Assembly (NCBI RefSeq): GCF_964188315.1 | Contig: NC_135656.1 | Span: 40,982,001-41,046,000 of the forward strand | DNA from: Podarcis muralis | Lineage: Eukaryota | Length of the DNA stretch: 64,000 nucleotides | Direction: 5' to 3' | Shown here: piece by piece, positions 11,201 to 34,800 of the stretch | Numbering within the stretch: position 1 is the first letter of the stretch | How the letters are laid out: each line of letters begins with the position of its first letter | Program-made: the position numbers and the translations under genes | The notes under the pieces: model-generated | Database searches by the model: none | What the model saw: only the letters and a program-made list of their open reading frames with translations | Told to the model about the DNA's origin: nothing

Positions 11201-11705
11201 GCACATAGTTATGAATGGAGAACGTTTGTTTGAAACCAATTGAGAAAGTGAACTTTGTTGTCAGCAGAGTTGGTGCACTGGAAATGAAAAGCAGAAGTGG
11301 GGAGAAAAAGAGGAACTGAATGGGCAAAATGTTAAATTATCATTTGGTTGATGCTGTTGGATTCCCCCAGCCCACCCTTCTTCCATTCCATACACAAACA
11401 AACAAACACACTTCCCTCCTGTCTATTTGTACAGAGAATAATGCTGACTGTTCTAGGAGATGCCTGAGTCTAGCACAGTGTTTCCCAACCTTTTTTGGGC
11501 AAAGGCGCACTTGTTTCATGAAAAAAATCTCGAGGCACACCACCATTAGAAAATGTTTAAAAAATTAACTCTGTGCCTATATTGACTATATATAAAGTAA
11601 CTCTCTTTAATAGGAATCAAATAAACACAAAGATAGTATTTTATAATTACTTTATTATGAAATAGTAAGTAAACAGAAATATGAAAAATTATAAAATACT
11701 TTATT

Positions 11706-11874
11706 CAGTGCGCAACCTGGGCCTGTTTACCATGCGCACAACATCATCCAACACATGAACTAGGTCTGCTGGTAAAGTCTTGGCTACGAGGGCCTCACGG
11801 TGCAAAAAACAATGCGTAACAATCACATCTGGATTTCTTTCCTTCACTCTGCTTACAAAGGCTTTGAAACCTTC
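11706..11874 (-). pseudogene. hAT Charlie/Buster transposase fragment, internally deleted
   Basis: Minus strand reads [45 protein letters not shown] (hAT CxxH motif). It is joined, in another frame, to the typical C-terminus QAQVAH* followed by AATAAA. Confidence 0.88.
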
Positions 11875-11883
11875 CTAGATATC

Positions 11884-11950
11884 ATCGTCATTTGCATGCT
11901 GTTTCCATAGTTAAAAACCATGCTCGAGGCGGCTTACGACATGGCAATAT
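11884..11950 (-). mobile_element. LINE (L2/CR1-like) 3' tail within the captured segment
   Basis: Reverse complement TGTCGTAAGCCGCCTCGAGCATGGTTTTTAACTATGGAAA...GATGAT resembles the tail at about 52880-52950. Confidence 0.55.
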
Positions 11951-12679
11951 TTACATAATTACCCAAATGCACTCATAAGAAACCGTATCAAAGCGCCCAC
12001 AACGAAATTAAGCAATCCCCACAAAAGTGCCTTAATCCTAATTATAGGGTTTTGGGGAGAGAGTGCTAAAGTGCCTCTCATCCACCAGAAGATCCTTAAA
12101 GTGAATTTCCCAAAACTGGACTCATATTGGTATGTTAATCTAGAACCAGGAGTGTTTCCAGGATGTGAACCTGCTGTTTTGAGGGCGTAAAACACCTCCT
12201 CCACAATTCTTATATTCCAGAATATAAGAATTTAATGTGTGACCACAACGGCCTCATGCTTACTTAAACCTATTGACAGCCCCTAGTAATTTGTACTAGG
12301 ATGTCAAAGTCATGATACAGAATGTGCAAAAGTACAAGTTTTAATCAGCCCTCATTGCCGGTGGATTTTGCTGCATGGTATGTTCAAAATTACATCTGTT
12401 CGTGGCGGAGGTTTCTGGATTTCAGCAAAGGCTCCTAACTGCTTGTTTGCATTATACTATTAAAGTGCTTTCAAAATTATGAAAATATGCAGGATCCTAA
12501 ATAAATCCTTTCGCATCAAAGGGTACGGAGTGGTAAGGATGACTGAAAACAAAGAATTTGGCAATCTGAAGTGGCTTAGTCTCTCTCTCTCTCTGTGTTT
12601 TTAAGGGGCTAACAAAATCCATCAAAGCCATTAAAGCATAAACTCACAGATTTTGTAAAAAAGTGAGAGTGGGATTTTG

Positions 12680-13225
12680 TTTATCATGGTGTGGAAGAGC
12701 CTTTGCAAACGCAGTTCAAACGAGGGTGGAACAAAAGCTTGCCCAACTGCAGTTTTTAGCGGAGTCTTATTGCAGCGAAAGGGGGCGCCGATGCCCACGC
12801 AGGCATTTCCAGCAGCTCTTCCTCTTCCTCCTCCGCCTCTTTTTGCGTTGCCAGCAAAGAAGGAATGAGGAAGAAAAGGCGCAGCGGCGAAGAAGCGCGC
12901 CTTCTCAGAACGCCGCTGCTGCCCGAGGACTACATTTCCCAGAATGCCGCGGCCGCCCAGCCGAGATGCGCCCTGATTGGACGGCGTTGCTAAGCCGCTC
13001 GCGCCGGGGCTGAGCGTTCGGCAGAGGCGCGCGCCATAAGATGGGCGTCGCGCGCGGAGCCTGGCTCGGGTCGCCAATGCTGTGGGCGGACATGGCGAGC
13101 TGGGCGGGACTCGGGCGCGCGCTGGGCGCCTGCTGCCTCCTGGGCCTCTTCTGCGGCGCTGCGCTGCCCTTCTCGCTGCAGGGCGCGAACGAGAAAGCGC
13201 CCGCCTCCCTCCCACGGCACACCAG
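12680..13225 (+). promoter_or_regulatory. CpG-island promoter inside the hAT element: ZNF143/THAP11 motif (12929-12947) and inverted CCAAT box (12973-12980)
   Basis: Dense CpG against a CpG-depleted background. ACTACATTTCCCAGAATGC and CTGATTGG lie about 60-110 bp upstream of ATG 13041. Confidence 0.75.
13041..13225 (+). CDS. Captured first coding exon of an unidentified secretory or membrane protein gene (signal-peptide-like)
   Basis: MGVARGAWLGSPMLWADMASWAGLGRALGACCLLGLFCGAALPFSLQGANEKAPASLPRHT, three in-frame ATGs, uncharged hydrophobic core, donor CAG|GTAACG at 13225/13226. No matching downstream exons found, and the gene was not recognised. Confidence 0.55.
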
Positions 13226-13339
13226 GTAACGTCTCGCGGCACACTAGTGTGCCGCGGAACACCGGTTGGGAAACACTGGTCTAGCAGAAGATAGCATCCA
13301 GAAAAGATAGAACCTGAATGAGAGCTGAATCTCTAGATA

Positions 13340-13690
13340 CACATGCTTGATGGAAAGTATTATAGGAGAAGATGCTTAGATAATGTGGACCTAGACCATT
13401 TAAGGCATTGTAATGTTAAAACCAAGTACCTTGCATTGGACATGGGGAAAGAAACATTTTAATACTTGCATATGTCTTCAAATAGGAGTTATGTAATCAC
13501 ACAACAAGCATCCAACAGTGGTTAGGTAATGGCGTTCAGTACTAGATGGAATTTCTGAACCATCATAAAAGGCATTCCCATGTACAGCACATTACAGTAA
13601 TCTACATGGGAAATCACTAAGGCATGGATGCCAGTGTCCAGGTCTCTGTCTTCCAGAAGGAACCTCTTCTAGTGAGTCAACATATCATGG
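13340..13690 (-). mobile_element. Old L2 LINE ORF2 C-terminal fragment
   Basis: Minus strand reads IHALVISHVDYCNVLYMGMPFMMVQKFHLVLNA, the degenerate L2 motif (HALVTSRLDYCNALY), with stops. Confidence 0.75.
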
Positions 13691-16600
13691 ATTGCCACGG
13701 ACTGCAAGCACTGCTTTCTGCAGAGGTTGGCTGCTCTGGTGGGTAAGATTGCCCTAATAAGTATGCACTTTGATGCATTAATCCCAAACTGGCCATTTTG
13801 ACATTCCATAGACTAGTCTTAACAGTCTTGGCTTCTTAATAAATACATGGGTCCTCACCTGCCTGGTACAGTGGAGGCTGTTATTGGAAGAGGCTGGAGC
13901 CAAAGGGGGATGTGAAGTCATAGTCCAGATTGGGAAACTGCAACAGACACTTCCCAGCACAGAATCCGGTGCTTCCCCTTGAAGGTGGTTTATGTGGGAG
14001 CAATTGCTGTATTTATAAAATACAGAAGTATGGAAAGCTGGTAGGATCACTTTTGATGAAGCAACCATTTGATGGGCCTCCATGGAAGCACAATAAACAG
14101 TTTATGAGCATGAGAGAACTAATGTCCCATAACCTTGCAGCTTGTGGAAGAGTTAGTCAAATCCACAGAACTAAGAGAGTCAAAGATTTCTTCACCATTG
14201 CTGTCACCAAGGAAACCTGACTGTTGTATGGCAGTATTTCCTCCTGGGGTTCTCTCTGATTGTTGAGTACTGTTTTTCTCCCCCCCCCCCGCCCCACTTC
14301 CCACTATGAACACTATAGTCACATCATAGGAAAGTGAGTCACAAAAATATACAGCTGATGCCTGTGTGTTTCCTGGTGACTGGCCAGTGTTGCGCCAAAA
14401 TGGTAGCATGAGGGTTGCAATTGTGACAGTGCTAGTGCAAGAGATTTTTCTGTCTGAGTCAGAGTAGTAAACGTAGTCTCCCACCACCAACACATAAGTC
14501 AAGGTGCATAATAGCCAATGCTGCAATAAATGTTAATTCCTTCAAATTCATTCTAATACCCAATGTCACTCAAGTTATTTGGATGAAAAACCTACAAGTG
14601 CTTCTTCCCTATTCTAGCAGTAAAAATACAACAATAATGAATAAGCCAACAATTTGCTGCTTTTTCATGATATCTGCCTGACAGGTGCCATCTTACTATG
14701 GCAAATTATAGAGTGGGCCCTGCTGAGCTACCATCTCTTGTTTTCTGCCAATGGGATGTGCCCAGATGATCTAGCCTTGAGTTAATTGCTTAATGGCATC
14801 TGATGTTGCCTTGAGGTGGACCTCCTTTGTGACATTTCAGATTCTTCTGTGATTAACTAGAGATGCTTTTGCTCATCTGTAAGGGAACAGATAACCTTTT
14901 AAAATCTTCTGTCTACAGCTTCTCAGGTCTGTGTTTTGTGTGAGAGAGGAATTATTTACTTCCCATGCAAAAGGTTCTTCCAGTCCGTGTAGACAGCACT
15001 GAGCTGAATGGGTCAATGGTCTGACTCAGGCAATTCCACATGACTTCAAAATGTTTTGGACTTTTCTCTAAATTACAGGGTTTATTCCATAGTTCTCCAA
15101 ATAACCTTGTGTGATAATCATCTATTGGTGCTATAGATTGCTGTCATTTTTGGTGCTGTCATCAAGTCTCTGCCCACAACCAAATGTCACCTGGGCGGTG
15201 GTTATGGCATTATTCCATCGATACAATTTTAACCTACTTTCCAGTCAACCTTTATATAAGAAATAAGCAGATAAAACCACTAAGCCACAGCAACCCTGTT
15301 CTGTTCTTTATGTTGCATTTCTGCCAGAAATTGAAGCAAATTTTTTGTGTGACAAAAATGGAGGGGCAGCTGCCAGAAGAACCCTTTAAATAAAGCATTA
15401 GGCAGAAAAGTTTCAAATCTGACAAAGTAGGTTTCCGCCCCCTTCTTATAGGTCAATTTTCATTTCACACGGAAGTTCTAGCAACCTATATGTACAGATG
15501 TTTCTGAGATACCTCTTCCCACTTCCATGTATCCACCCCTGCACTTACATTGTTTGTTTAACCCAATTAGCTCTTCAGTAACTTCATGGGTTGATGATTT
15601 GGCCATATTTTGCTTCCCATGGCAGGATGCTCTGGTTACGACAAGTGGTTCTTGTGGGTTAAATGCAACCTCTTTAAAATTGTTTGTGCTTGTTTTCTTT
15701 TTTTAAAAAAGTTTAATCCACATTTGTCAGCTTCACAAACAATTTCATGAAGAATTTTTTGCACGGTAATGAGGTCAGCTTCTAGTTCCTTTCAAAAACG
15801 TTCATGGCTACACAGTTTTGAAACACATTTCCAGGCGCAGACCCCCAACAGTAAGACCATCTCCCATCCTGGTTGTTCACAGATGAAATAAGCTATTGCA
15901 AGACACCCTTATTCAAATGACCCATAACATTTCAATCAAGTTTTTTTAAAAACAAAACAAAACAAAATGAGCCCCCTAACCTTGAATTCTGGATTCCAGA
16001 ATCTTTCCTTTCCCTTTACACCTGAGTTTATTAATGATCAGTAAAACTGGTGTTTTAGTAGCACATTAAGAATACAAAGCCATTGGCAAACATTAATTCC
16101 TTCAGTTCTGTGAAAGAGGTCAATACTGTTACCTGTTGGTTTCAGGCATGACACACAGAATGATAAGTAGAGGGTGTGTGGCTAAGTTAGATTTATGTCC
16201 AGACATAATTCAACACATTTTTTGGTGATGTATTTTGTCTTTTTCACCTTTTTTTGGCAATGCATAAATAACCATGCTATCTGGCTCTGGTGCCATCAAA
16301 TCAAAGAGTTAACATTCCATGTTAGAACTCAGTTTTTGAAGGAGCACATGGATATAGGAGGCAAACTTTCCTTTGTAGCCAAGGGGTTACACCTAAGAAT
16401 GAGACTCCCTGTTGACTAGCAGTGTCCATTCCTTAATTCTTGCAATTCTTTCCTTGGGATAAGTTGCACTCATTTTTTTCTCTTGCATAAGGACTGCTCT
16501 GTTTTCGCTTTGTGGCAATATGTGCAATGCATTGGATATGTCTTCCCCGATCCAGCTCAAGGAGGACGGGCGGGGGTGGGGGAGTGCACACAGCTCCTCC

Positions 16601-18084
16601 CAGTATGCCAGCCCTTCCTTTTCCATCCCCATATGCACAAACGAATCTGCCTTGAGCCAGAGCACTGGTCCACCTTGCACATTATTGTCTTCTACACTGA
16701 TGGGTAGCAGCTCTCCAGGGCTTCAGATGGGAGATATTTGCCACCTACCTGAAGATGCCAGGGCATGCAAAGCAGATGCTCGTAACACTGAGCTACACAT
16801 GGGAACAGAACATACAAATGCTGACATCTGTGCATAAAGTTCAACACACACAGCTGCAAATCATGTGGTTGAGTTCCTCCTTTCACATAGCAAATGGTCC
16901 ATATGACTTTTCACCCAAGTTTGTTGGCTGAAAGATGGTTAGGTGGCATTCACACAATCCATATGGAGGAGGCAGGGCTAACACACACAGTGCATGTGGA
17001 GCAGCTGCGCATGCTTTCTCCCTTCCATGCTCTGGGCTGGACCAGGGGAGATGTATCATCTGATTTGGGCTTGTGTTAATTTAGAGGACCTACACATATA
17101 TGTATTTTGGCATTTGTAATGATATTGCCAAGATAGTGGTTATCGGTCCATCTGTGAAAGAGTAAATCCACTTGCATGTTAGTAAACAAACTTCCAACAG
17201 GCCCTTTTGATTGCTTTGTTTTGGTCCCTGTGTGTTTAAAGGAGCATATTTAAGACTCTGAGTGCACAGGAACAACAACAGAGCATTTGGGGCTCTGTGG
17301 ATACTCTGTCTCTGATCTTAAGGTCTCTGGGCAGCTTGAGATGTGGGATAATGCAAGAGGTTGCAAAGCTGGAATTCATCCATACGTTAGACTTTCTCAA
17401 AGCTTGAGCAAAGATAATTGATGGTGCTTGCACTGCAAATAATGTACTGGATGTGGACTGGATTTTCTCAGGGGATCCTCAGCAAGGTGCCTACTGGCCT
17501 GCCTGCATATGTGTGCATGCATTTGTGCAGGTGTGTGTGCTCACACACGGTAACTTTACCAGATGATGATGGTCTTTCACCCTTCCATTGGGGTGGTTAA
17601 CCAGCCATGCTCAACCTGGTTCTGGTGACAGAGGCTGCAAGCTGCCTGCAGACTGTATTTCCCCAAAATGTCTCTGAGCCTTGCAATTCAACTCCCAGAA
17701 CAAAAAAGACTGCAGTGATCTACTTCATAATTCACTTTCTATAATCTTTTCCTGTCTTTTATGCCCACACTGATAAGTAGGTCATTATTGTTACTGCAAA
17801 TGGAGGGAGCTATATTTTTTTCTGTCTTGTATAAGATTTGTTTAGTTTTCAACCATTTCCTCTTTCTTCTTCAAGTGAGAGAAAAGGAAACATGAGGATA
17901 AAACTGATCGTGAGTGCAGAAGTATGTGGCTCACAGTGCACTGCATTTCTAAGAAATTCTTGTAAGCCTCATCCTTCCTATATTGGCCACAACTATGTTT
18001 GCACCACCCCGGGTGGTTTCAGATGTGCTTATGGCGTGTGCTGGTGAAGTAAATACTGTTCAAAGGTTTTATGTTTTTCAAAAT

Positions 18085-18562
18085 CTTGATAGCACGGTGC
18101 CTGAGTGCTGGAAGAAAGACCTGCTCCCTGCTGAAAGGCCCATTTCCACCTGGCCTCGGGTTCGGGGCTCACTACTCACCCTGAACAGCTAAAAGAGGCC
18201 ACTGGGACATTGTTGGAACCACTCTTGGGTTGGGGCAACTGGCTAAAATGTTTAAAAATGTTTTAAATGGTTCTAATTTTGGTTCCTCTGTTTCATTTTT
18301 CTTGGGTTGGTGTTGGTTAAACGTTTAGTTGGGGTTGGTGGTTACTTTAATTTGGGTATAACTGTAAACTGCTTGTTATTATTGTTATTGATTTTATTGT
18401 TTTATTGGTCTGTTTGTTGCTTGTATAGGATATCTTGTTTTTTTTAATGTTGGATGTTTTGTTGTGTTTTATATGTTGTAAGCCGCCCAGAGTGGCTGGG
18501 GAAACCCAGCCAGATGGGTGGGATATAAATTAAAAATAACAACAACAATTATTATATTATTA

Positions 18563-18614
<52 letters not shown>

Positions 18615-18627
18615 TTATTATATTATA
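18085..18627 (+). mobile_element. L2 LINE 3' end with long (ATT)n tail
   Basis: TGTAAGCCGCCCAGAGTGGCTGGGGAAACCCAGCCAGATGGG terminal motif; start approximate. Confidence 0.75.
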
Positions 18628-20120
18628 ACAAGGTGACAAATGTGAATGAGGCTGTACAGAAAGAATGAGGAATTTTCAGTGCAGGTTTGGGGAGAGACAG
18701 CAACCTTGCAGGGTAGGTCTTTAGATTAAGGTTTTGAATAGTCTTGCTGAAAATCTCTTAGATCAGCTGCCTGGTGGCCTCTGGGTGGTTTGGACCTGAG
18801 CTTCCATCAGCCCCAGCCAGCCCAGTCAAGCTGGCCATGGCTAATGGGAGTTGTAGTCCAGACCATCTGGAGGGCACCAGCTTGGAGAAGGCTGCTTTTT
18901 ATATTTCCTCCCAGTTAATTCTGTCTAGTGGCCTTCAAGCCAATTAAATTGGCTTGGTCAAGCATCCTGATCCATGGAGAGTTGGGAGGCAAGGGTTGAA
19001 TGCCTGCATGGGAAAGGAAGAAGGAGGTTCTTTCCGTGAAGAGAACAATGCAACCTGAACTTGGAAGTGTCTTCCTTGCCGACTATTGACATTGCCTATT
19101 CTGCCAAAGCCAACAGAGGACGATCCATGAGGCACAGCTGTATTTGCTCAACATTGTGCATATGCTGCAAAGTCTGAATGGTGGGGTCTGGCACCCATCC
19201 TCACCCTTCGCTTATTTGCTTGTTTGAATCCTATAAGGGCCATCTAGTCTGACCCCCTGCAATGCAGGAATCAACGCTAAAATACTTCCGCTCCATGATT
19301 CAGAAAAAAAGCTCCCAGAGCAGCTTAACATATATCAGTAGCATCATACTCCTTACTCTCTCAGACTTACAATCTAAAAGGTGAAGCACAAAAGGAAATG
19401 GCATTGGAAGGGAGGAGGAAAAGTGGGGCCCTGTCCCACCGAGCATACTTGTTATTGTGCGAGTTGGAAGGTGGCATCGCAGGTGCAGGCACATGAATGA
19501 AACAAATTGTGTCACTGGAAATATATCTCGTAGCTGTTCTTCTTTGCTAAAGCTGCTACAGTGTCCACTAATGTTCATTCTAGCTTTCAAAAAGTCTCCT
19601 TTCAGGTTGGATTCTGGAACAGATTTGCATATGATATTTGCAATATGTGTATGCTCTGTTCAGATCAATGAGTTTGTGCAACAGCATTGAGAAGGTGGTG
19701 CTTCCACTGTTGCCAGTTCTTTCCTGATTTTATTTGACACTATTTGGATGCTGCTTAATCACGAAAACCTCTCAGCAGCCCCTGAAGCCAAACGATACGC
19801 ATTTTGTACGTTGTGTCCTTGTTCCTAATAAATGCCGGCCAGTGAGAGGTGAAGGGATCTCACCAGCGTGCTTATATTCTCATTACCGTGTGTCTTTGGA
19901 GCCACATTAAATCCTAGTAATAAACCATTGATGTGAATGGAGTCTATGCCAGAGATGAACGCGTTTCTTTGTATTTAAGAACAGAAGAGTGATTGCACTG
20001 AAAGCCTGCCTCTCAGGGCAATAAACAAAGCCTTGTTTGTATCGAGATATTCGGTTTAATTGGTTTGCTTTGAGGCAAAAAAACAAAGCAAAACCCAGGC
20101 TCTCCTTAATGTGTCTGCAG

Positions 20121-20161
20121 TAGCAATAACCTAGTAGAGACTGAAGACGGACTGCCAACAG
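20121..20161 (+). other. Candidate 5' untranslated exon of PIK3R5
   Basis: Strong donor CAG|GTAAGG at 20161/20162, acceptor TGTCTGCAG at 20120, mild local CpG enrichment at 19780-20100. Prediction only. Confidence 0.4.
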
Positions 20162-22106
20162 GTAAGGGGAAGAAGGGGGGGTGAGTGTGTGTTGTGGTCA
20201 AAAGCCTAACATCTTAGTTCCACATTTGTCAGTTTCTTTGGAACTACCATCTTCAGTTCAGTAGCTTGTTACAGAGAATCTAGAGAGAATGTTTTTCTCA
20301 AAAGGCTATACAGTTCAGGGTTCCTCTTTTGGCCTCCTATGGTTTTTCAATCTTGACTGATGGCCATTTGGTGGCGGGTGGGAATAAAAGGCAATTGTAG
20401 CACTGCTCTGTCTAGTTTGAGCAGGCAAAAGCATATTGAGATGTTTCAAGGATCCTGTCCCTTTTTATTTTAAAGTCTCCTGCTTGCAGGATGGGGCCTA
20501 TCCATTCCCTCAACCCCCATGGACCATGCTGTGGATTAGCGATGAACAGTCTCTTATTTGCACCTTGACTAGTCTTTCTCGGTTGGCCCAGTGCCTTGCT
20601 TTTGTCCTGGGCTAGGGAAAGGGGGGCAAAACAGCTTTCTGTGCATTTCCCTCACTTCACTTTTAAAGCAAAAGAGCTCAGAATTAGTCCAGGAATTATG
20701 AACCAAAAGATTTGTGTACTGGATGCTTCTTTAAAAGTTGATTAATACATGCATGTGCAAAAGTTGTTCATGTAGTCTCATGCGTTTGGGTTATAATTTA
20801 AAATAGCTTCTCAGCGCACACCCCCCCCCAAATATAGTGTTATATTAATAATACTTTCCTGAGTAGGTGCTATTCTAGCCCTTGTCAACAATGGTGACTT
20901 TTGTTGTGTTTTCTCTAGGCACAATTCAGTGTTAGGGCCCCTCCAAATTGCTGTTCATTTTGTTTTTTCAACATGTCATTGATACAATAATACTGCATTA
21001 GTTAAGTATTTATGTTGGACCACCCACCTATCAGTCTACTTTATTAGTTGGTCTGAGATGGTTGCCCAGTGTTTCTGCATTATTGCCATTGGGAGGGGCA
21101 CTCTTGCACTGTAGTGCATTCAAAGCAACACACACCTGAAACATTTGTGGTACGACAAGTTTCAAGATTTCAGCAGGAAGCTGCAGGACATGCATCAACT
21201 GGAAACAAAGTAGTACTGTATGTCTGCCCCCAAAACATGCAGGCTGGGAATTGTAGTCTAGCAACATCGGGAAAGCACCACATTGACTATCCCTGCTATA
21301 TAGAAGCCATTGAGTGTTGTGTAGCTGGAATGTAGCCTACTGTACAAATGTAAGAGTGTCTGTGTTGCTCCGCCCACTTCTTCCTCTGGCCTGAACTACC
21401 ACTGGCAGGTGGCCCCTGGAAGGGAATGTGTGGTCTGTGATCTGAAAAAAGTCTCTTACCCTGGCATTAGAGACCATACAGTTTGCTTTCATAGAGATGG
21501 ATCAACAGTATCTCTTACTTAGTGGGTTTGGCCTTTGCTAATTGTAAGAAGGTAGCACACAGTCTTCACACATGTGCAGTATTCGCCTGGTTTGTCAAGA
21601 TTGCAGTTTCCAGATACTTGGTTCTGAACCTTGAGCTAATACTGTTAATCGCCAGTATGGAGATTTGAAGCCTTGCTGTTCTGTTCTGCTTTACCTTCAG
21701 CAGAAGGAATTTATGCGGTGGTGATATTTTCCCTAGCCATGTTCTCCTTCCTGTTGTGTTTCCTCTTTCAATTCACTTAATGACAGTGAACTTTATATGC
21801 ACACAAAAACATACTCTAGGTAATTAGGAAATAGACTGCATTCATAATGTGCAAGTCTGATGCTGTGGAGTCTAGACTTGGAAAATACTGCTTCCCGATA
21901 GCTAAATTTGCAAGAGCAGGGATAAATGGCAAGGCTTTGACTGTGGTTGTTATGGCTTCTTCCAAGTAAATCTCTGACCAGAAGATGGGTTTCCAGTGCT
22001 GCAATTTAGAAATAAGCTCAGTCCCTCTACTTTCTTTTCTTTCTTTCTTTACTTAAAAATTATATTTTGTGAGTGAAGTATATTTATTTAATCATCATGG
22101 TTTATA

Positions 22107-22351
22107 CAGTGGTACCTCGGGTTACATACGCTTCAGGTTACATACGCTTCAGGTTACAGACTCCGCTAACCCAGAAATAGTGCTTCAGGTTAAGAACTTT
22201 GCTTCAGGATAAGAACAGAAATCGTGCTCCGGCAGTGCAGCAGCAGCAGCAGGAGGCCCCCTTAGCTAAAGTGGTGCTTCAGGTTAAGAACAGTTTCAGG
22301 TTAAGTACGGACCTCTGGAACGAATTAAGTACTTAACCCGAGGTACCACTG
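22107..22351. mobile_element. Tc1/mariner (Tigger-like) MITE
   Basis: Perfect 18-bp TIR CAGTGGTACCTCGGGTTA, TA TSD, internal (GC)TTCAGGTTA repeats. Confidence 0.9.
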
Positions 22352-25300
22352 TATTGGGATAACTGACCTTTGGCCCACCAGATATTGTTGCACTACAATG
22401 CCCACCATCCCTGATTATTGACCATGCTGTTTGGGATTGATGGAAGCTGGAGTCCAGGTTAGTCACAGCTAGTTTATACGGAGTGCGTAGTTCAAAGATA
22501 AGAGGAGAATTAAGACTTCTGTTGTCAGTTTTTTTTATAGGAGGCCTATCCCTTTAAGAATCCCTGTGTTATGCAGCAGACTAACTATTCCATTTCAGAA
22601 TGGCAGGCCTATCATGTCATAATAATGTTACTTAATGAAAAATCAGCATCAATGTAGTGGCCCCCAGGAGTCTTCTTTGTGTAGGCCAATGGCCTATTCA
22701 CCATAAGCAATGGCGATGCTTTCTTGGGTTGAATGCCAAAGCTGCTCATTTCTGCCCCCCATCCTCCAGTACATGCTTTGGCTGTACTTTGAGTGCGGTT
22801 CATAAAACATGGTTGTCCGTGAGCCAGTCCTGCTTTAGGGAAGAATGTTAATCAGTTGACGCATTTACCGGTTGTTAATGTGACTTTAGACTTGTGAACT
22901 TACTTTATCATAAACCTCTTGAGTGTGCATACTCTGCAAAAAAAATGGAAATATTAAAAGAACAGCTAGTCTAGGGGAGTTCTGTGTGCATGTGACTGTG
23001 GTAAGCAAATGTCAATCTACATACAAAGGTGTGTTTATGTTGCCCCTGGAAAAGGCTTAGATTTTTTTTGGGTCAAATCTCCTAGGGAAAAGAAAATCAT
23101 CAATTGTTGAACAGTAGCCAAGAATACTTGTTGGCCCTCATTATTCAGGAGTTTCTGCATGAGTGGGATCACAAAGAGCTAAACCTTGGGTAATCGCTTT
23201 CTTTAGCTCTTCAGGCTAGTCATGTTTAGCGTCTTACATTTTTGGGATTGAGCATAATCTCCCACCGACTGAACGACTCTGGGAATGAGTCCACTGCAGT
23301 TACTTGACAACCTACCCACACCTAGTTCATTGCACATCAGTGGCTGAAAAAGAGGCGGGTTTGAGTAGAGAGGAAACCTGGATGCCTCTAGAATGTCAGT
23401 TTTGAGTTGTGGGAGCAATTCAAGCACATATCAAGAAATTAGAGTTTATGCATTAAAAAACACAGTTCAATAATAAAAAGTAAATAGTAGCAAGGAAAGG
23501 GTTTTTTTTTTAGAACAGGTAGAAGTGATTTCAGTGTGAAAGAAAATTAAAATTGTCGCTGGCATCCAACTACCTTGAGAGAGACTGGAATGTGCCTCCA
23601 GGGATGGAGAATCACAGCGCCTGCTGTGGCTGCAGAGATTGGTAACTCATAACTGCAGCCTCCTGCATTGTTTTGCTGTGTTAGCAGCTCTGAAGTGAAC
23701 TCTCCAGGGTGCAAGCCTGGACAGTGTGTATGGAGGCCCTGGGCTGTGTGAACAAATTATAAAGAGGTGTTTCATTTGTGATTCCAAAATTCAATGAACA
23801 GGACCCATCTTTCAATAAATTTGCTTGGTAATGGCATTATATTGCATATCATTGCAATATAGTGGGTTTATGCAATTTGAAGAGGATTAAAGCATTCTGT
23901 TGCCCCAGCACAAAAAAGAAACAGATATTTTGCAGCTGGGAAAGTGATGGGGAAACGCATTGGAAAGTATGGAATGAACAAATGGTTAACATGAAGACAC
24001 AAGCAAATAACGATGAATGCAGCTTGAATGCTCATTGTTGTATAATATCCCTACAAACTAATGGGAAAGAATGTTTAAAAAGACTGGATACAATGTAACA
24101 TCTGTACAAGCAGATCAGGATGACTTTATTATTATTATTAATCGGCTTCCACACATGTGTCTTAGAGCGATGCACAGGATAAAATAAAAACAGCTTTTAA
24201 AAGTAGCACAAAAATATAACAAAAGTGTTTTAAAAACAATGCAAAGTAGACTCCTGTAGCAGAGACTTATTCATATAGCTGGGAAAGCTGTAAAGATCAT
24301 CTGGAGGAACCCTTGCTTATCTTTTGGTTCAGGAAAGCTTGCTTGTCTGGACATTGTTCTTCCTTGCCCAGAACCAAGCAACTGTTTAAAAACTTGAATC
24401 AGGCATAACATTCCCTTGGGTTTCTAGGGACACTTGTATGATAGCAGATACTTCTGTAATATAAGGCATCATTCTGTTCTCTACCAGCCTTTTGGTGACT
24501 TTTGAACCCTTTTGATTTAGCTGATTTCAGAAAGTTGAAACCCGCCCTATTGTTGTACCGTTTTGGTTTCCTTGTTTTGTTTTTTATCATCAGCGTGTAT
24601 AAGTGAATTGTAGATAGGGCCTTTATCAGCAAGATTCTGCTCTGCAACAGTTCGGCAGGAGTACCCATTTTTCACTTGTCCTGCTGCCAATGTTCCTTCT
24701 TCTCGCCATCCATTAGACATTCAATGTAAGAACTACTTGAAATGTAAATGTAAATGCAAAAAAATTAAATTGAAACTGAAAACCAACAAAACACAATCTT
24801 TTCTAAATACAAGTAATTTCTGACATAAAATATAACTCATTTCTATTATTATAAGGTGATAGATAATATTCCTCACACATGTGGTTTTCTTTTCTTTTAA
24901 AAAACCAAAACCAAAATAAATAAATAAAGTCAAATATTAACTTAGGTGAGTGGTTGAAAGCAGCAAATCCTTTTATATTCAGAAAACAAGATCCCTTTGT
25001 TATGAATCCTACCATTGACATTTTTCTTTCTTTCTTTCTGATATAATGCATTAATTCCATTGTAAGCACAAATTCCCATGTCTTTTGTGTCACTTTTTGA
25101 AGGCATAACTTCTAATCACCATATTTTGGCATATAAGGTTCTTGTTGTTTTAACTATGTACAAGGCTATATTCCTGATGAATTAAGCTACCCATGTAGTT
25201 TAACCCAGGCAGACATATGGGCCAGGATAGATCTTGTCTAATAACAACTATTATAGGATAATTCCCCCACCTGCTTTTGCTAATTGACATTCACACCATA

Positions 25301-25879
25301 TATGACACAACTTTCCCTTTTTTTACCCTTGCCATCTCTAGGAAGTGGGTGGGTAAGACAGATAAAAATCAATCTTATTCCTCCTCCCGCTTAATGCTTT
25401 TTTGCACATGTGTATACATGTCTTGACATTTCACTGCCCAGCAGGGTATTCTGTTTGAGGTGGTACTCAGTGTGAACTATCTGACTGTTTCATACATGGA
25501 AATATTTACTTGATGCTGCAATCATGGAATAATGAAAGCATATGTGTGAACCTACCCTTGAGGCTACTTCCTATACAGAAGACACTTTAGTGGCTTCTCC
25601 CTCCCTTTATATTCCTGAACTTATATTCACTGGTGGCACTGGTGTTGTGGAATGCTGTCCCTGCTGAAATAAGAGGGGCCCTATCAGTATTGGCATTCCG
25701 CTGGCTCCTGTAGGCACCACCTGTTTAGGCAAGCATTCCCCTGAACTGAACTTTCCCTGTAACTGGTTTTTACCCCAATAGAATTGTTGTGTGTTTTAGT
25801 TATGTATTGATTGCATAGTTGTAAGCTGCTTATTTTGGCCCAATAGTAATAATAACAACTATTTTATTGTTTATTATCA

Positions 25880-26160
25880 TTATTTATTAAATTTATATAC
25901 CACCCTTCATCCAAAGATCAGTAGCCCAAAATAATTTAAACAAAAGCAACCCTCCCAACACACACACACACACACTTACTTAAAAGGCTGTAGAATATTA
26001 ATTAGCCAAAGGCCTGGTTGAAGAGGAACATTTTCGCCTGGCAGCTAAAGATGTATAGTGAACGTGCCAGACAAACCTCCCTGGGGAGAGCATTCCACAA
26101 ACAGGGAGTCACTGCCAAAAAGGCCCATTCTCAGTGTTGCCACCTTCTGGACCTCTCTAC
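25880..26160 (-). mobile_element. L2 LINE 3' end
   Basis: Reverse-complement match to the L2 ends near 6100 and 60450; boundaries approximate. Confidence 0.65.
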
Positions 26161-26927
26161 TACCAATTTATGCCTTTCCCCTCTACATAAATCTCCCTTC
26201 GGTTTGAACAACCTGCAGCAAAAAAACCCCCTAGTTAGTTCTTTTTACTCCAGCAGCTTTTTTCAAAAGCTTTAAAAAGATATAATACAGAGGTGAGAAA
26301 TATCTAAGGGGTTCCATCGCTGGATCTATATAACTAAGGGATGCATAAGCTTGTCTTGGTTTTGCTTGTGACTCTTCCTATCTCTATAGGGCTATAAAGA
26401 AAGGGACTGAGTGGTGACAGTTGCTTTCAACTTAGCAACAACATGAACTCTGGCCAATTGCCCTTGATGAATAATTAGTAACCCCTGAATGGTGCTGGGA
26501 GTAACTAGCTGGGAATATATATGCTGCCAAATTCTGCATTGGCTGGAATTTGGCAGCAGAATTGAGTTCCTGCCAATTTTGAGTCCTAGAATGAACCAGG
26601 CACTTGCTGGAGTCTATAGCACTTTACACCCCAGCTCTAAATGGCTTCTTTGATGTTGCAGGTTGTACCTGGAGATGTGATGAATAGGTTTCAGTGCTAT
26701 GTAGCATGGATTGCATTACTGAAGTGGGGTGTTTGTAGATTTTTGACAATGTTCCATGCTGCTCCAGTACTCTTTGAAATGAGGAGACTACAGAGTGGTT
26801 ATTTCTCAAGGCACAACTATCCACTTCAGGTATAAATAAGGCCTTTCTGAGACGTCTCTGGATAGATATGAGAGGTGGGCGGGTGGAAATGGAAACCACC
26901 GCACTTAGGTGATGTATGAACTATACT

Positions 26928-27114
26928 CAGAGGCGGAGCTAGCTGCTCCATCACCTGGAGCGGCGCACAGGCTGTGCACCCAGGGACGGGGCTAGCATCC
27001 CAGGGGGGCATTGCCTGCGGCGAGCAACCCAGGGGACAGGACAGCAATGTCACCCCCCTCAGGGATGACACCTGGGGTGGACCGCACCCACCGCACCCCC
27101 TTCCTCCACTAGTG
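26928..27114. mobile_element. hAT-type MITE
   Basis: 8-bp TSD ACTATACT at 26920-26927 and 27115-27122; degenerate TIRs; GC-rich body. Confidence 0.7.
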
Positions 27115-28803
27115 ACTATACTTAGTCACCCACTGATAATTTGTCACATTCCTATTTTTTGGCCTGAAATGATGGCAATGACAAGTATGACTAATGCTAG
27201 CCGGTGTGGTGCAAAATGCCTTCCCCCCCAGGAAGCCACGTGCCAAATGCTTCTATACTTGTTCAACAGGATACCCAAGCCAGGCATGATTCTGTTTGTA
27301 GTGGAAGATGACACAGAGGTTCAGTGCAGATCTTGCAGGTTCATTGTGCACCAAACCTTCAGATATGGCGTTAACAGCCTTTGGCAATCTGTGTGTAGTG
27401 TGTATATTATTGATTCAATTAAAAGCAAAGAGTAACATAAGATCTGAAGGGGGAAAGAACAATGCAGGAACTTTTCTTTTTCTTTTACAAAAATCTGTAG
27501 AACAGAGCAGTAAAATAGCAGAAGTGGGATTGGGAGGAGGGAATTGGCAGCAAAAAAGCTACATGCAGACTAATTATAAGTAAGGCATAGCCTTGTGAGC
27601 AGGGCCATGACTTTAATATAATTATATAGTTTTATATAGAAATCTAAGCCGTTTCCTGATTTGTAAAGGCAGGAGTCTCTGGTGGCATCGTGTTAGGAAA
27701 CGATGACAGGAACAGAATCTGCATCCTGTGGTTTTTGCACATTACGGGAATGTCCTGTCCTATCTCTGCTGTCAGTTCTCGATTGCACAACCCAGGGTTT
27801 TGAGAGAGACCAAATTTGCTATGAGGACTGGTCAGACTTCCTGCCAGTGCGTGACCAATTGGGGAAGGAAAGCCTTCTGCTGATCACACTTTGTGGTGTC
27901 CCATAAGGAACTGACATAAGAGAAGACTATTTCCAGGCCACTTTCAGGGTGTGAATCATGCCCCTTGTTCAATCACCACTTTCCTTGACATTTGCATGAA
28001 AATGTGATTAAGATGTTGAGAGAACGTGGGGATGCACGTTCTAGTTATTCTATCCTGAGCTCCTTTGGGTACACAATCTCTTCTGTACTGGTGCTATCTT
28101 AGAGTGGTAAACTTGCCCATAGAAGGATGGTCTTGTGTTGTGTGTGTATGGAGACCTTTAAGCCACCTGGGCATGTTGGCTGCCTGTCCTAGATGCACCT
28201 CTCCTGTGGAAGTACTCTTTGTCTAACTTGCACAAGTTATTGGTAACACTTTGATGCAGTGACTCCTGTCAAAATGCAAGGAAATTGACTCTTCAAAGGT
28301 CACTTCAAAGATTCTTGTAGCCATGAAATTCTGATTGCATGAGTTCTAGCTGGTCAGTTGGCCATTCTGTTTGGTGTTGATGGGAGTTGTAGTCCAACAA
28401 CATCTGGAGGAACACAGGTTCCCCAATCCTGGTATAAAAAATGGATGTGTATGAACAGGAGCAACGACATGGTAGAACACAGCTCAGCTGTGGATCCTTT
28501 CCTCTCTTTTATCTTGATGCCTTTTGAAAGTATAGGAAGTGCAGAGCTGTGGATTTTCATTTACCCTCTTGTTGCAAAGCTTTCCTGTTGGGTTATGTGA
28601 GGAGTCAAAATGAAGGCAACTGTTTCCCTTTTTCTGGCATCTCAAAATCCTACATGATCATGAGCAGAAGAAGATTGGGAAGCAGACTAGACACCAACTG
28701 GAAAAATTGGAGTAAACTAAAAACTGGGTTTGATTTATGTTTACCACTTGTGTGTGGCTAACTCTGACTTACTTCTTTTTATATCTACAGGAGATGAATT
28801 AAA

Positions 28804-31800
28804 ATGCAGCACACGACGTGCACAGAGGACAGGATCCACCATGCACTGGAGAGGTGCCTTCATGGCCTCAGCAGAAGCACTTTCTCTGCTAGCACTTGGA
28901 CTGGTAAGTGACTAACCCCATCACCATACCAGGATGATTTTTCTTTCCTCTTCAGTTTGTCATTGAAATATATTTGGAGGCTTTCCCCCACTCTTTAGTG
29001 ATTCTTATTGCAATAGCAATGTTTGCTCATCTGTGGTCAAACTATTAACCAATGAAAAGGGAAGCAATTCAACATTTAAACAACGAACTGACGTTAATCC
29101 TCCTTCTTACCCAAACTCTCTTGATTTTTCCTCCTCCTAGTGAAAGAGCTTGAAAGCCTAACCAACCACCTGCTAGTAAAAAATGTCTCATTGATAATTT
29201 GGGGAATAAGGTGAACATCACAGATGTTCCCAAATATTCTAGTATCAGTAGAACAGTGGCCACATTAGCACACTACACTAAGGCAAACCATGGTTTAGTG
29301 CAAATGCAGTAGCTCCCAAGGAAGAATTTGCAGCTGCTCTGCTCCTCCCTGGGCTTTTTAGGTCAGCGCAGTGCAGCAGCTACGTCAAGGTTTGACCTCG
29401 AATGCTGTGTGTCTCCTCCTTAACCATGGCCTTAAACTATAGGAGATTGTGGTTGAGGAGGAGAGACCTTAACCACAATGCTGGGTTTGGAAGACGTGCT
29501 AAGCCTAACCTTGGTTTTGCTGCTTTCCTCCATTGACCTAAAAAGCATGGGAAGAGGGGCCAAATGGGCGCATGTTGATCTCCGGAAGCCAGTATTCTCA
29601 TGTGGTCTTGCTAAGCTATGCTCTGACTTACTGTGGTGTGGAAACCAGGCCATTGCGCTGAGCTCTCGCCCCACATGATGGGACATGTTTTCAGAAAGAA
29701 ATCTGAAGCTAACTGGGGCTATGCAGCCATGTTGCCAGTTTACTGATTTGAAATCCTCATCCTACAGCCTCAATTTTTAGTTTTCAACATGGCTTTTAAG
29801 GATTGTGGGGTGGTTTTTTTGAGCCTCAAAATTCTTGACTTTTGCTCCAACCTCTTTCTTACAACAGAGCGGAGGGCAGGAAGATATTTGGCGACATTTA
29901 CACCATGCAGCACTTAAAAGTGCTGCGATACCACTTGATGCAATGGTAGGCAGCTTTATAGGTTCACATTTTTATATTGGCCTGCTCCAGGGTTTGGTGG
30001 GCATGGAGTGGGGCATGGGCAGCTCATACGTGGAGCCATGGTGGTTACAGCATCTCAGTAATGTTTCACAGCAATTGCTGGTTGCAAGCCATGAGCTGCC
30101 CTTGCCTTTCAGAGAACCGAGAGAGGAAATGCTAACCATCAATGCCACCCTACACAGGCAGCACTTGCTGGAGAAGGCAAGCAGTCCTCAGAAGAGAACT
30201 CACTGTTTCTGTTCCAAGAAAAACATCTCTTGAAGCTCATCTTAAGCTGCCAGCCGCAAATGTGGGTGCTGCTGCCACCCAACTTTTTTTTAGCTGTGCT
30301 GCTGCAGTGTGTTGCCATCTGGATACAGCCTTGCAGTGTTAATTTCCTCTGTTGCTGATCTAGCACTATTTTGCTAAACTAGAGGGGGAGGACCAAGGTA
30401 CCAGAAGTTAAGGAAGAGACAGCAAGGAGCACAGCCAGCTACTCTGGAATTTGCCTTCCATGCTGACCCTGCTATTATTGTTATTATTGTTATTATTATT
30501 TACAATAATAATTGAATTAATACCTTGTCCTTCCCCCCTAAGGAGCAAGCATAGCAGCAAACAGATAAACAATTTACAAGCAAAAACAAATCAAAACATT
30601 CTAAAAACAATTATAATTTAGAACATCTAAACACAAGTACAATTTACAACTTTCTAAAAGCAATTTCAAGTAACAGCTGCGTCCTTCCAAATATCTTGAG
30701 GTTGCCAAGTTGCTAGGTCCTTATCTACCATTTAGATTCTTATTCTCTAATACTTAAATCCCCCCCCAATAGCTCAAGGTGGGACACATACTTCTCTCTC
30801 CACCTCCTCCATTTTATGCCTACCACAACCCTGTGAGGTTGATTTAAACTGAGAGACAGTGACTGGCCCAAGGCTACCCAGCTAGCTTCATGTTTGAGTG
30901 GGGATTTGAACCTGGGTCTCCCCAGTCCTAACCACATTAACCAGTATGCCACAGTGGTGCCCATCCCTGTGTGGTTTGCACACACTGCATCAGTGTGTGT
31001 GTCTCTTTCTCACTTTTAATCCTTCCTTGCAGGACCAGCAATTTAACCGCAAAGATGCAAAAGAGATACAAAACTTTGCCACAGATCCTGTAGCAGGAAA
31101 AAGATGGAGAGTAGTATTGTCTATGGGCTGCAATGGCTCTTTGCTTTTACTGCTTCACCTCAGGGACTCAATGAATTATGTGTATTATGGATTGCTTATA
31201 TTATTTGGACATGTTGCCATAGGAAACTTTGAGGCAGCTCTACCCTAACAGTTAGTGCACATGATTTGTTGGAAATGTTGCAGGCTAATGAATTAACCCC
31301 AACTGGGAATAATTGGTGTAGTTCAAAAATACATTGTTTCCCTAATGCTGTATTCCAGGTTGTTCTTATCCCTAATAGGGTGGTAAATGCATTTTCTCTC
31401 TTGAAGAACTGGATCCACATAGTAGGTGACTACTGAGAAAGAAAGCTCATGCACTGTATCTTTCTTTTTTTAATAACTCCACACACATCTCTACTTGTAT
31501 CTTTCATTATGGTCCATGAATCTCTTTCATTTTGCCTATATCCCATCTAGCTTAAAATTGCAATGAACATCTGTCTTCTGCAATTAGGACACTGAGTGCT
31601 CTGGAATTCGTTCCATGCTCAGAACGTGACCTGTTTCTTCATTTTTTGGCAGCTGGGCTATGTCTGAATTGTTGGAGTCTCCAGGAGTTGGTCAGTCGTG
31701 ATGCAGGGAACTACCTCATCCTTCTGGAGAAAATCTTGCAAAAGACCCAAGAGGTAATATTTGTACAAAGGGAGTTCTTGCTCAGTCTGATGCTCTCTCT

Positions 31801-34800
31801 CTCTCTCTCTCTAAGAATCTGGAATACCTCTAATACAAATAAGAATGAAAAGTGGCTGGTTGCTTTGTGCATCAGCCCAGCTTGCTGCTGATTTCAGTTT
31901 GCCTTTGACCAAGTTCTGTGCTCTGCATGGTGTTTCAACATGTTAAAACAATTTAAGGCAAGAGAGTAGATGCACATAATACCTTGCAACGGGAGTAAAG
32001 GCAAAGGTAAAGGGACCCCTGACCATTGGGTCCAGTCGTGACCGACTCTGGGGTTGCACGCTCATATCGCTCTATAGGCCGAGGGAGCCGGCGTTTGACC
32101 GCATACAGCTTCTGGGTCATGTGGCCAGCATGACTAAGTCGTTTCTGGCGAACCAGAGCAGCACACGGAAATGCCATTTACCTTCCCACCGGAGCGGTAC
32201 GTATTTATCTACTGGCACTTTGATGTACTTTTGAACTGCTAGGTTGGCAGGACCAGGGACCGAACAACGGGAGCTCACCCGTTGCGGGGATTCGAACCAC
32301 CAACCTTCTGATCGGCAAGTCCTAGGCTCCGTGGTTTAACCCAAAATGGCATCAGCATGTCCTGGAGGAAGTCGCTAGTTTTTGAGGCCATTTGTAACTC
32401 TGTATGTTGGAAACAGAATCTGGTGTTTAGGTCAGTTTGTCACTCACAGAATTGCTCCCACCCCCTTTGCACCCTGGGAACCCACACATAAGTGGATATG
32501 TCCCACTTTTTAAATGATTAGTATTTTACAGGTAATAATAAACCAAGCAATAATCCCACCCCCATCCAACCAAACTGCCCCTGTACTTGATGTTGGTTGA
32601 ATCCTGCTTGGAGTCAGCCATGTCTTTAGGGTAGCGACAAGGAACCTGTGGCCCTCTAGATGTTGCTGGAGCAGAAATCCCACCATCCCTGACCATTGGT
32701 CATGTTGGGTGAGGCGGATGAAAGTTGGAGTCCCTGGAGGGCTTCAGGTTCCTCACCCCCTTTTTTAGAGTGAGGTATCCGTATAGTTGGGGACGCGGGT
32801 GGCGCTGTGGGTAAAAGCCTCAGCACCTAGGGCTTGCCGATCGAAAGGTCGGCTGTTCAAATCCCCGCGGCGGGGTGTGCTCCTGTTGTTTGGTCCCAGC
32901 GCCTGCCAACCTAGCAGTTCGAAAGCACCCCCGGGTGCAAGTAGATAAATAGGGACCGCTTACTAGCGGGAAGGTAAACAGCGTTTCCGTGTGCGGCTCT
33001 GGCTCGCCAGAGCAGCGATGTCACGCTGGCCACGTGACCCGGAAGTGTCTCCGGACAGCGCTGGCCCCCGGCTTCTTGAGTGAGATGGGCGCACAACCCT
33101 AGAGTCTGTCAAGACTGGCCCGTACGGGCAGGAGTACCTTTACCTTTACCTTTATCCGTATAGTTAAAGCTATGGTTTTCCCAGTAGTGATGTATGGAAG
33201 TGAGAGCTGGACCATAAAGAAGGCTGATCGCCGAAGAATTGATGCTTTTGAATTATGGTGCTGGAGGAGACTCTTGAGAGTCCCATGGACTGCAAGAAGA
33301 TCAAACCTATCCATTCTTAAGGAAATCAGCCCTGAGTGCTCACTGGAAGGACAGATCGTGAAGCTGAGATTCCAATACTTTGGCCACCTCATGAGAAGAG
33401 AAGACTCCCTGGAAAAGACCCTGATGGAAAGACTGAGGGCACAAGGAGAAGGGGACAACAGAGGACGAGATGGTTAGACAGTGTTCTCGAAGCTACCAGC
33501 ATGAGTTTGACCAAACTGCAGGAGGCAGTGGAAGACAGGAGTGCCTGGCGTGCTCTGGTCCATGGGGTCACGAAGAGTCGGACACGACTAAATGACTAAA
33601 CAACAATCTGGCCTCAGCAGCAGTCTCTGGGAACTTTTAAAGGACAGCAGTTTGCCAGTTACTTGGTTTTGCACATTGCTGCAAGGAGTGGGCACAAGAC
33701 ACCATGTGTATTACTTCTCCCCGCTGCCTCCCCACCCTGCAGCAGAATGTCTTGAGCCGGTGTTGACCTTGCTGTTTATGTGGCAATGCAGATACTGTGC
33801 ATGGGATCCTGTGGGATTCAGAGTCCTTGAGGATCATGGGTTGACTTGAGCCCAGCTCTGCTCTCTGTTATGCTGGATCTGGAGGTTTGAATTTCACTGC
33901 TGGGAAAAAGAGGACAATGAATGAGTTAGAACACCTGGGTCAGCAACTGTCAGAGTCAAGTGGAGATTTCCTACTTCCTGCTTTGTGCAACACCTCCCCA
34001 TTAGGGAGCAATTGTCTCTCACATGGCAGAATGTTGGGAGCTGCTTGGCAGGCTGAGCTCCCTGCCTCCATTGTTCCCCAGCTATTGTGATGGCAGGCAG
34101 TGGGGAATTGAGGAAGGGAGACCCCAGCTTGTGGCATATAAAAGGCTTTCCAGGACTCTTGTTTGCAACAGGGTCACAGCAAGGTTGCTGCCCAGGGAAT
34201 GAATGTAGCAGGTTTTCCTGTGAACCCGTTCGTTAGAAGCTGTTTCCCCCCGCCCTTTCTTTTTAAATTGTTGTCAGACAGTATAACTTCCTGGCGGGTT
34301 TAATGGAGGCCCTGCCCTGGCTATTCTGAGGAATTTTTGGCCTAAAAATAGTCTTGTGGCTCAACATGCACAAATCTGCAGCAGGTGAGAGCCTGCAAGA
34401 AGAAAATGTACTGCACTTAGAGGTACTATGTGCCACAGCATCATTATAGGGCCTTGCAAGAGCAGAAAGGGCCATAGAGGGGTTGTTCCCCTCTTCATGG
34501 AGCTAACCACCTCTCTTCCTTCTCTAGGAGATACTTCAGTTATAAAAAAAATAAAATAGTAATAATTAATAAAACGATAGTGATAGAAATAATAATAGTA
34601 ATGAGGAGGATGCACCTAAGTTGTTCTGTTCACAGACCAAGGTCCCCTTGTGCAATCGGACTTTCCCTCTCCGCCCCCCCTCCACCCCGGTGCCCCTCTG
34701 CACCCACTAAATCTGCTCTAGAGAGTTGGGGAAACCCCAGAACAAATTTAGGAGGCACATGTGAGGAGGAGTGCGGGGAAGTCTTCTTGAGTAAGTGGAC

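Follow-up and report, generated by a model that had tools for sequence, protein, structure and literature searches.

The locus analysed here raises the question of what a promoter-like, CpG-rich sequence is doing between the ends of a DNA transposon. It lies some 13 kb into a 64-kb stretch of wall lizard (Podarcis muralis) DNA (GCA_964188315.1, OZ076955.1:40,982,001-41,046,000), referred to below as the window. Such a sequence could be the true start of a host gene, a part of the transposon itself, or host DNA that the transposon has taken up. An earlier note on this DNA proposed the last of these. Our analysis leads us to favor the same reading, a young non-autonomous hAT element in which most of the transposase has been replaced by approximately 1.33 kb of lizard DNA, otherwise known as a Pack-hAT, and we assign this a probability of about 0.68. 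The features on which the argument is built are collected in Table 1.

Table 1. Features of the element and of its nearest coding exon (window coordinates; a slash in a motif marks the splice junction).
Feature	Position	Strand	Basis or remark
Left TSD copy, GTCTAGCA	11468-11475	.	Identical to 13279-13286
hAT left arm (3' part in transposase sense), AT-rich	11476-11879	-	Composition, motifs
Left TIR, CAGTGTTTCCCAACC, begins CAGTG like hAT ends	11476-11490	+	Exact-copy scan
Putative transposase relic, 57 codons	11704-11874	-	ORF list and Atlas lead
Cargo part 1, last ~150 bp of lacertid retroposon	11880-12030	-	Alignment to second copy
Cargo part 2, moderately AT-rich, ~770 bp	12031-12799	.	CpG observed/expected 0.53-0.59, far above flanks
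Cargo part 3, CpG island	12800-13211	+	GC 0.68, CpG observed/expected 1.06
ZNF143-type site with ACTACA extension, ACTACATTTCCCAGAATGC	12929-12947	+	Exact match
Inverted CCAAT box (ATTGG)	12976-12980		Read from sequence
ATG ORF, 62 codons	13041-13229	+	ORF list
hAT right arm, ~67 bp, including palindrome and right TIR	13212-13278	-	Motif array
Splice-donor-like CAG/GTAACG	13223-13231	+	7/9 consensus positions
Right TIR	13264-13278	-	15/15 inverse match to left CAGTGTTTCCCAACC
Right TSD copy, GTCTAGCA	13279-13286	.	Identical to left copy
PIK3R5 first coding exon, ATG at 28804	28791-28905	+	Acceptor cttctttttatatctacag/G at 28790/28791

Both ends of the element, which is 1,803 bp long between the duplications, are intact. 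The earlier note had described perfect 15-bp terminal inverted repeats (TIRs), an identical 8-bp target site duplication (TSD) on both sides, and subterminal GGCACAC motifs at both ends together with a perfect 22-bp palindrome at 13235-13256, and all of these are present as described. Subterminal motifs of the CGNGGCACAC type (CG(N)GGCACAC-type) are found once on the left (11528) and twice on the right (13210 and 13232), with a GGAACAC variant near the right end at 13250; the GGCACAC/GGAACAC cores stand at 11534, 13216, 13238 and 13256. The left arm also carries a GAGGCACACC motif at 11532-11541, and the right arm contains three CGG(C/A)ACAC(C/T)(A/G)G motifs. Exact copies of CAGTGTTTCCCAACC occur twice in the 64 kb, at the two TIRs, and matches with 3 mismatches occur at chance level. 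Two near-TIR matches at 30952-30987 adjoin a SINE-like stretch and were set aside as looking like chance. We calculate that chance alone would yield about 2e-6 cases per window of 15-bp repeats in perfect inverse orientation, no more than 2.5 kb apart, with matching 8-mers at their outer borders.

The TIRs of hAT elements have a consensus start of (C/T)A(G/A)NG, and repeated subterminal motifs serve as transposase-binding sites in these elements. An 8-bp TSD, TIRs that start with CAGTG and subterminal motif repeats at both ends are all found here, and this is one hAT-type insertion event of a non-autonomous element. Since identical 8-bp duplications lie directly outside perfect TIRs, everything between the TIRs appears to have been delivered by a single insertion. 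The empty site expected at the orthologous position would read ...GCCTGAGTCTAGCAGAAGATAGC..., and no paralogous empty site was found in the 64-kb window, where the joined flanks are unique.

Relatives of these ends were found in metagenomes. A metagenome scan recovered the exact 23-bp left terminus on 50 contigs, where it marks the termini of short hAT-like elements bordered by nTnTA-type 8-mers, a pattern that the TSD of the lizard element also fits. Most of these elements share little with the lizard element past the terminal 23-34 bp, so they represent related (sister) families from some different host. The short element L028:114-452 is among them; its similarity extends to both arms, at a weaker 73-75%, and it has four CGGAACAC(C/T)(A/G)G motifs at the end equivalent to the right arm. 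This motif array places the junction between cargo and right arm at approximately 13211/13212. Neither the window nor any of the four lacertid PIK3R5 loci that we compared yielded a further copy of this hAT family.

What remains of a transposase is confined to the left arm, where the earlier note had recognized a Charlie/Buster relic. This minus-strand frame had no match in Pfam or PDB, while the ESM Atlas language model gave leads to FAM200-GTF2IRD2-like (FAM200A-like), ZBED8-like and DUF4371 clusters with scores of 0.87-0.93. Proteins of the FAM200A-like, ZBED8-like and DUF4371 kinds are domesticated or active Buster/Charlie-type hAT transposases. The frame and its hAT-type lead are in line with the earlier description, and the hAT identity of the relic is best read as a language-model lead. 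Its reading frame ends at about 11878, and there is no transposase-like reading frame beyond it in the element. The interior between the arms, approximately 1.33 kb from 11880 to 13211, shows no sign of transposase, and this apparently foreign DNA occupies exactly the place of the missing transposase gene.

The interior begins with a repeat. It is the end of a retroposon, whose ATG-repeat-like tail directly abuts the transposase relic, and BLASTN within the window gave 82.5% identity over 63 bp between this segment and 52858-52920. P. raffonei and P. lilfordi share the second retroposon copy (52537-52945), which Lacerta and Zootoca lack; this sister copy is Podarcis-specific, and the cargo therefore includes lacertid repeat DNA. 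The cargo retroposon retains CpGs where the second copy has TpG. The earlier note had called this segment a LINE tail; it is the 3' end of a retroposon, about 150 bp in length, and we leave its class (LINE or SINE) simply as retroposon. An explanation of the whole cargo as one nested retroposon was ruled out, as the similarity extends over about 150 bp only, the remainder is unrelated, and there is no TSD at 11879/13212. For the middle part of the cargo, neither the window nor Rfam or Pfam yielded a match. It includes the (CT)n tract that had been reported earlier, here as (TC)7.5 at 12580-12594. Scans for Rfam families, tRNA-like sequences and bacterial promoters returned nothing relevant.

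The last part of the cargo is the CpG island. Under criteria of at least 200 bp, GC above 0.55 and CpG observed/expected above 0.6, positions 12800-13210 (about 410 bp) qualify, and no other CpG island occurs in the window before 32 kb. The ZNF143 and CCAAT boxes that had been reported within it were confirmed. For ACTACATTTCCCAGAATGC, which we take to be a ZNF143-type motif, 0.05 matches are expected by chance at up to 2 mismatches. A one-mismatch copy of this motif also lies inside a squamate repeat at 21239-21257, so the motif by itself is no proof of a gene promoter. Judged by its composition and motifs, it is reasonable to regard the island as a plausible vertebrate CpG-island promoter.

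CpG retention extends to the transposon sequence itself. CpG observed/expected is 0.56 in the left arm and ranges from 0.53 to 1.06 within the element, versus 0.07-0.08 in the flanks. A CpG-rich element with flawless ends between CpG-depleted flanks suggests either that the insertion is recent or that the island is unmethylated here. The earlier note had taken the perfect ends to suggest a young event.

Could this interior be the element's own sequence, that is, the GC-rich 5' region or promoter of a hAT family, or a module shared across such a family? Read in the transposase sense the island does occupy the element's 5' end, the expected place for a transposon promoter, and the failure to find a parent gene (see below) would be accounted for. 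However, the island reads best as a promoter on the strand opposite to that of the relic, and on the minus strand it is not followed by a transposase N-terminus. Island and relic are also separated by a host retroposon tail as well as a microsatellite, and the interiors of the related elements that share these termini are unrelated. We consider this origin very unlikely. The case for capture is an anatomical one, in which foreign DNA at the transposase gap, a host repeat, the lack of a transposase frame and high CpG content together point to host DNA.

The earlier note had further described a captured first exon with an ATG-initiated, signal-peptide-like ORF, and we conducted a closer analysis of this frame. 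The ORF is present and includes a hydrophobic stretch at residues 24-45, and its final five codons and stop codon fall in the transposon arm. Its length is at chance level for DNA this rich in GC, as ATG ORFs that reach or exceed 62 codons appeared in 73% of 1000 dinucleotide-preserving shuffles of 12800-13230. No homologue of the 62-aa product was found among proteins of similar length (34-108 aa) in a set of 5.8 billion proteins, nor was there a match in PDB. ESM Atlas likewise gave no homologue for it, and its recognition was low (1304). Ten ORFs from around the site, looked up by exact match, likewise gave neither homologue nor parent. The island ORF is probably not a meaningful coding exon, and the notion of a captured first exon is not supported by the shuffles and searches.

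The relation of the element to the neighboring gene bears on whether the island might belong at this locus. The largest ORF in the window (42521-43258) matches PIK3R5, the p101 subunit, in a representative protein library. When a turtle PIK3R5 protein is mapped onto the window, it defines 17 plus-strand coding exons that run from the ATG at 28804 to the last coding base at 52070. Among the squamate orthologues compared, P. muralis PIK3R5 is identical to the translation of the big exon over all 248 residues. The P. muralis locus retrieved with this protein agrees with window 18804-62073 at every base, and the element accordingly occupies OZ076955.1:40,993,476-40,995,278. The strong acceptor at 28790/28791 means that at least one non-coding PIK3R5 exon must lie upstream. 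The element is 15.5 kb upstream of the PIK3R5 start codon with the island oriented toward the gene, and the first PIK3R5 coding exon is the nearest plausible splice partner of the donor-like site in the right arm.

This geometry invites an explanation in which PIK3R5 would have its own promoter in the island, together with the gene's first non-coding exon, and the TIRs would be unrelated to it or derive from a rearrangement. The island is the sole one upstream of PIK3R5 in the window and faces the gene, the acceptor of the first coding exon calls for an upstream exon, and protein accessions point to two transcripts coding one same protein. Such an explanation has to contend with identical 8-bp duplications placed outside perfect TIRs, which two independent insertions would match by chance in 1 of 65,536 cases, and with a donor that falls in transposon sequence. 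We regard it as extremely improbable. Since the donor-like site sits between two transposon motifs, it is a contribution of the hAT arm and not of a captured intron.

Under the Pack-hAT reading the island may still matter to PIK3R5. An in silico join of 13225 to 28791 produces a 63-codon ORF whose stop lies 6 nt ahead of the PIK3R5 ATG, and it would thus be an upstream ORF, with no fusion protein predicted. With the island directed at PIK3R5 and a GT donor available in the arm, this gene could thus have a mobile promoter-plus-donor cassette upstream of it. The earlier statement that the apparent gene start is cargo agrees with its position inside the TIR- and TSD-bounded element, but to call it just cargo may undersell an island that faces PIK3R5.

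If the interior was captured, a parent would be expected elsewhere. BLASTN of the element against the 64-kb window revealed no donor within the 11 kb upstream or the 50 kb downstream. No parent locus was found in the PIK3R5 loci of four lacertids (Lacerta agilis, P. raffonei, P. lilfordi and Zootoca), which start at window-equivalent positions of 17.9-20.0 kb, 4.6-6.7 kb short of the element site. A 203-aa minus-strand ORF compared with 5.8 billion proteins had no parent among those of 112-355 aa. Because the protein searches covered lengths of 34-108 aa and 112-355 aa, and thus not full-length parents, the negative result for a parent gene is a weak one. With no parent locus found, the term captured is based on anatomy and not on a donor. 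The earlier claim that the interior is host DNA is in keeping with the retroposon tail, the CpG-island marks and the missing transposase frame, and the parent gene that should accompany it was not found in these searches.

In the mechanism that we propose, a hAT copy would have suffered a double-strand break, within it or at it, and a template switch during the repair would have brought in the interior as a copy of a host gene's 5' end. The chimeric element would then have been moved to its present site by transposase supplied in trans, creating the 8-bp duplication. The order of events may also have been reversed, with a plain hAT inserting first and producing the TSD, and a later break being repaired with about 1.3 kb from elsewhere, in which case the cargo never transposed and would be single-copy. 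Perfect TIRs and a TSD fit this order equally well, and a second copy of the cargo was not seen in the 64-kb window. In a survey of animal genomes, which identified 370 Pack-TIRs in 100 genomes, 208 of the 370 being hAT, the most frequent carrier, single-copy Pack-TIRs mostly arose in this way, with the gap filled inside a previously inserted transposon (Tan et al. 2021, Nat Commun 12:4280, PMC8277862). In primates a plain transposon was found at the orthologous site of the outgroup in 94% of cases, and few multicopy cases had truly transposed (PMC8277862). However, donors for such filling are usually nearby, 57% of them within 15 kb (PMC8277862), whereas none was found here within 11 kb upstream or 50 kb downstream. 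The typical gap is also small, with a median of 4.6% of the element, while here nearly the whole interior is replaced. We consider filling in place unlikely, if a serious contender, and capture at a donor site followed by transposition fits better, though unproven, given the lack of a donor within these distances and the replacement of almost the whole interior.

A more ambitious interpretation is that wall-lizard hATs are a still-active vertebrate counterpart of Pack-MULEs that preferentially copy and scatter CpG-island promoters, and that the promoter and the donor in the arm drive transcripts spliced into PIK3R5. We regard this as speculative and quite unlikely to hold in full. If it were true, a promoter of the housekeeping type and an upstream ORF of 63 codons would be added to PIK3R5, which acts in leukocyte signalling. 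Capture of gene fragments by cut-and-paste elements is well studied in plants, while for animals most of what is known comes from a single survey, with none in its lizard. A clean young example with a whole promoter-like CpG island is therefore useful, and a single copy by itself is a good specimen and not a discovery.

Among known systems, an internally deleted, MITE-like hAT has the same ends, 8-bp TSD and subterminal repeats as the element described here, and a transposase remnant to which the putative relic would correspond. It differs in that such an element carries only transposon sequence, whereas here 1.33 kb of apparently unrelated promoter-like DNA sits at the deletion junction. The probable Pack-hAT here is an example of a known, rarely reported kind. 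The survey found no Pack-TIR in its one lizard genome, anoCar2, and reported that Pack-TIRs often make chimeric transcripts with neighboring genes; the terms first exon and GC-rich do not appear in its main text (PMC8277862). The element resembles the animal Pack-hATs in being a DNA transposon bounded by TIRs and TSDs with what appears to be a non-transposon host interior. It differs from them in two respects, since a parental copy is part of their definition and was not found here, and the replaced share is far larger than the median gap of the survey.

Pack-MULEs of plants favor GC-rich 5' gene ends, which is a possible parallel to the island in the lizard element. Both Pack-MULEs and Pack-CACTA are cut-and-paste elements that pick up gene fragments and are able to move them (PMC8903248). 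They differ from the element here in belonging to other superfamilies, with 9-bp or 3-bp TSDs and, in MULEs, long TIRs, and in being found in plants in thousands of copies.

The bat Helitron HelibatN3/NUBPL carries the promoter, 5' UTR, first exon and intron start of a host gene (Thomas et al. 2014, PMC4224331). Vespertilionid Helitrons capture 5' ends with a marked preference, and promoters and splice sites acquired in this way contribute to host transcripts (PMC4224331). These elements are rolling-circle, have no TIRs or TSD and are present in thousands of copies, and their donor site comes from a captured intron, whereas the donor here comes from the transposon. As a DNA transposon that bears a gene's 5' end, the bat Helitron is nevertheless the closest functional parallel among vertebrates to the element described here.

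The left terminus of the hAT element upstream of PIK3R5, a 23-bp sequence (CAGTGTTTCCCAACCTTTTTTGG), recurs exactly on 50 JGI metagenome contigs (L003-L052; for example Ga0210059_*, JGI24021J15306_* and JGI24158J21664_*). On these contigs several distinct families of short elements, whose interiors are unrelated, end in this terminus, and nTnTA-type flanks lie beside them. Among the complete elements, some measure about 200 bp and have asymmetric ends, CAACCTTTTTT at one and CAACCG(G/A)GGTGCC at the other. The occurrence of the same 23 bp on metagenome contigs reflects either deep conservation of the termini or transfer of elements between distant hosts.

The retroposon tail within the cargo of the hAT element and a retroposon located beside PIK3R5 (see the table) are members of one repeat family. 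The latter copy is found in P. muralis, P. raffonei, and P. lilfordi and is missing at the corresponding site in Lacerta agilis and Zootoca vivipara, and it is therefore an insertion of the Podarcis lineage. Motifs of the ZNF143 type, of which the cargo also holds one, occur at two further sites in the window, and the first of these is near a stretch that is repeated elsewhere in the PIK3R5 locus of L. agilis. Squamate repeats seem to carry this motif, which makes it a weaker marker of promoters in these genomes.

Features of the window outside the hAT element
Feature	Position	Strand	Remarks
ZNF143-type motif ACTACAA(T/C)TCCCA	21239-21257		apparently non-promoter DNA
PIK3R5 (p101), complete coding region	28804-52070	plus	17 coding exons
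ORF fragment	33100-33480		within PIK3R5 intron
Retroposon, ~410 bp	52537-52945		just 3' of PIK3R5 stop codon
239-codon ORF	57194-57913	minus	internal duplication
ZNF143-type motif ACTACAA(T/C)TCCCA	61801-61819		apparently non-promoter DNA
Strong CpG island	62400-63200		observed/expected up to 1.4; ~10 kb downstream of PIK3R5

The first coding exon of PIK3R5 holds a tiny upstream ORF, ATG-AAT-TAA, immediately 5' of the start codon. The 239-codon ORF gave a weak match to GDSL-like lipases/esterases (E 1.4e-4, below the Pfam cut-off) and may represent an esterase-type ORF1 from a LINE. The intronic fragment had no match in Pfam, and we take it to be typical of the C-terminal part of ORF2 in LINEs of the BovB/RTE type. 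The CpG island downstream may serve as promoter for the gene that follows PIK3R5; by synteny with human, that gene would presumably be PIK3R6.
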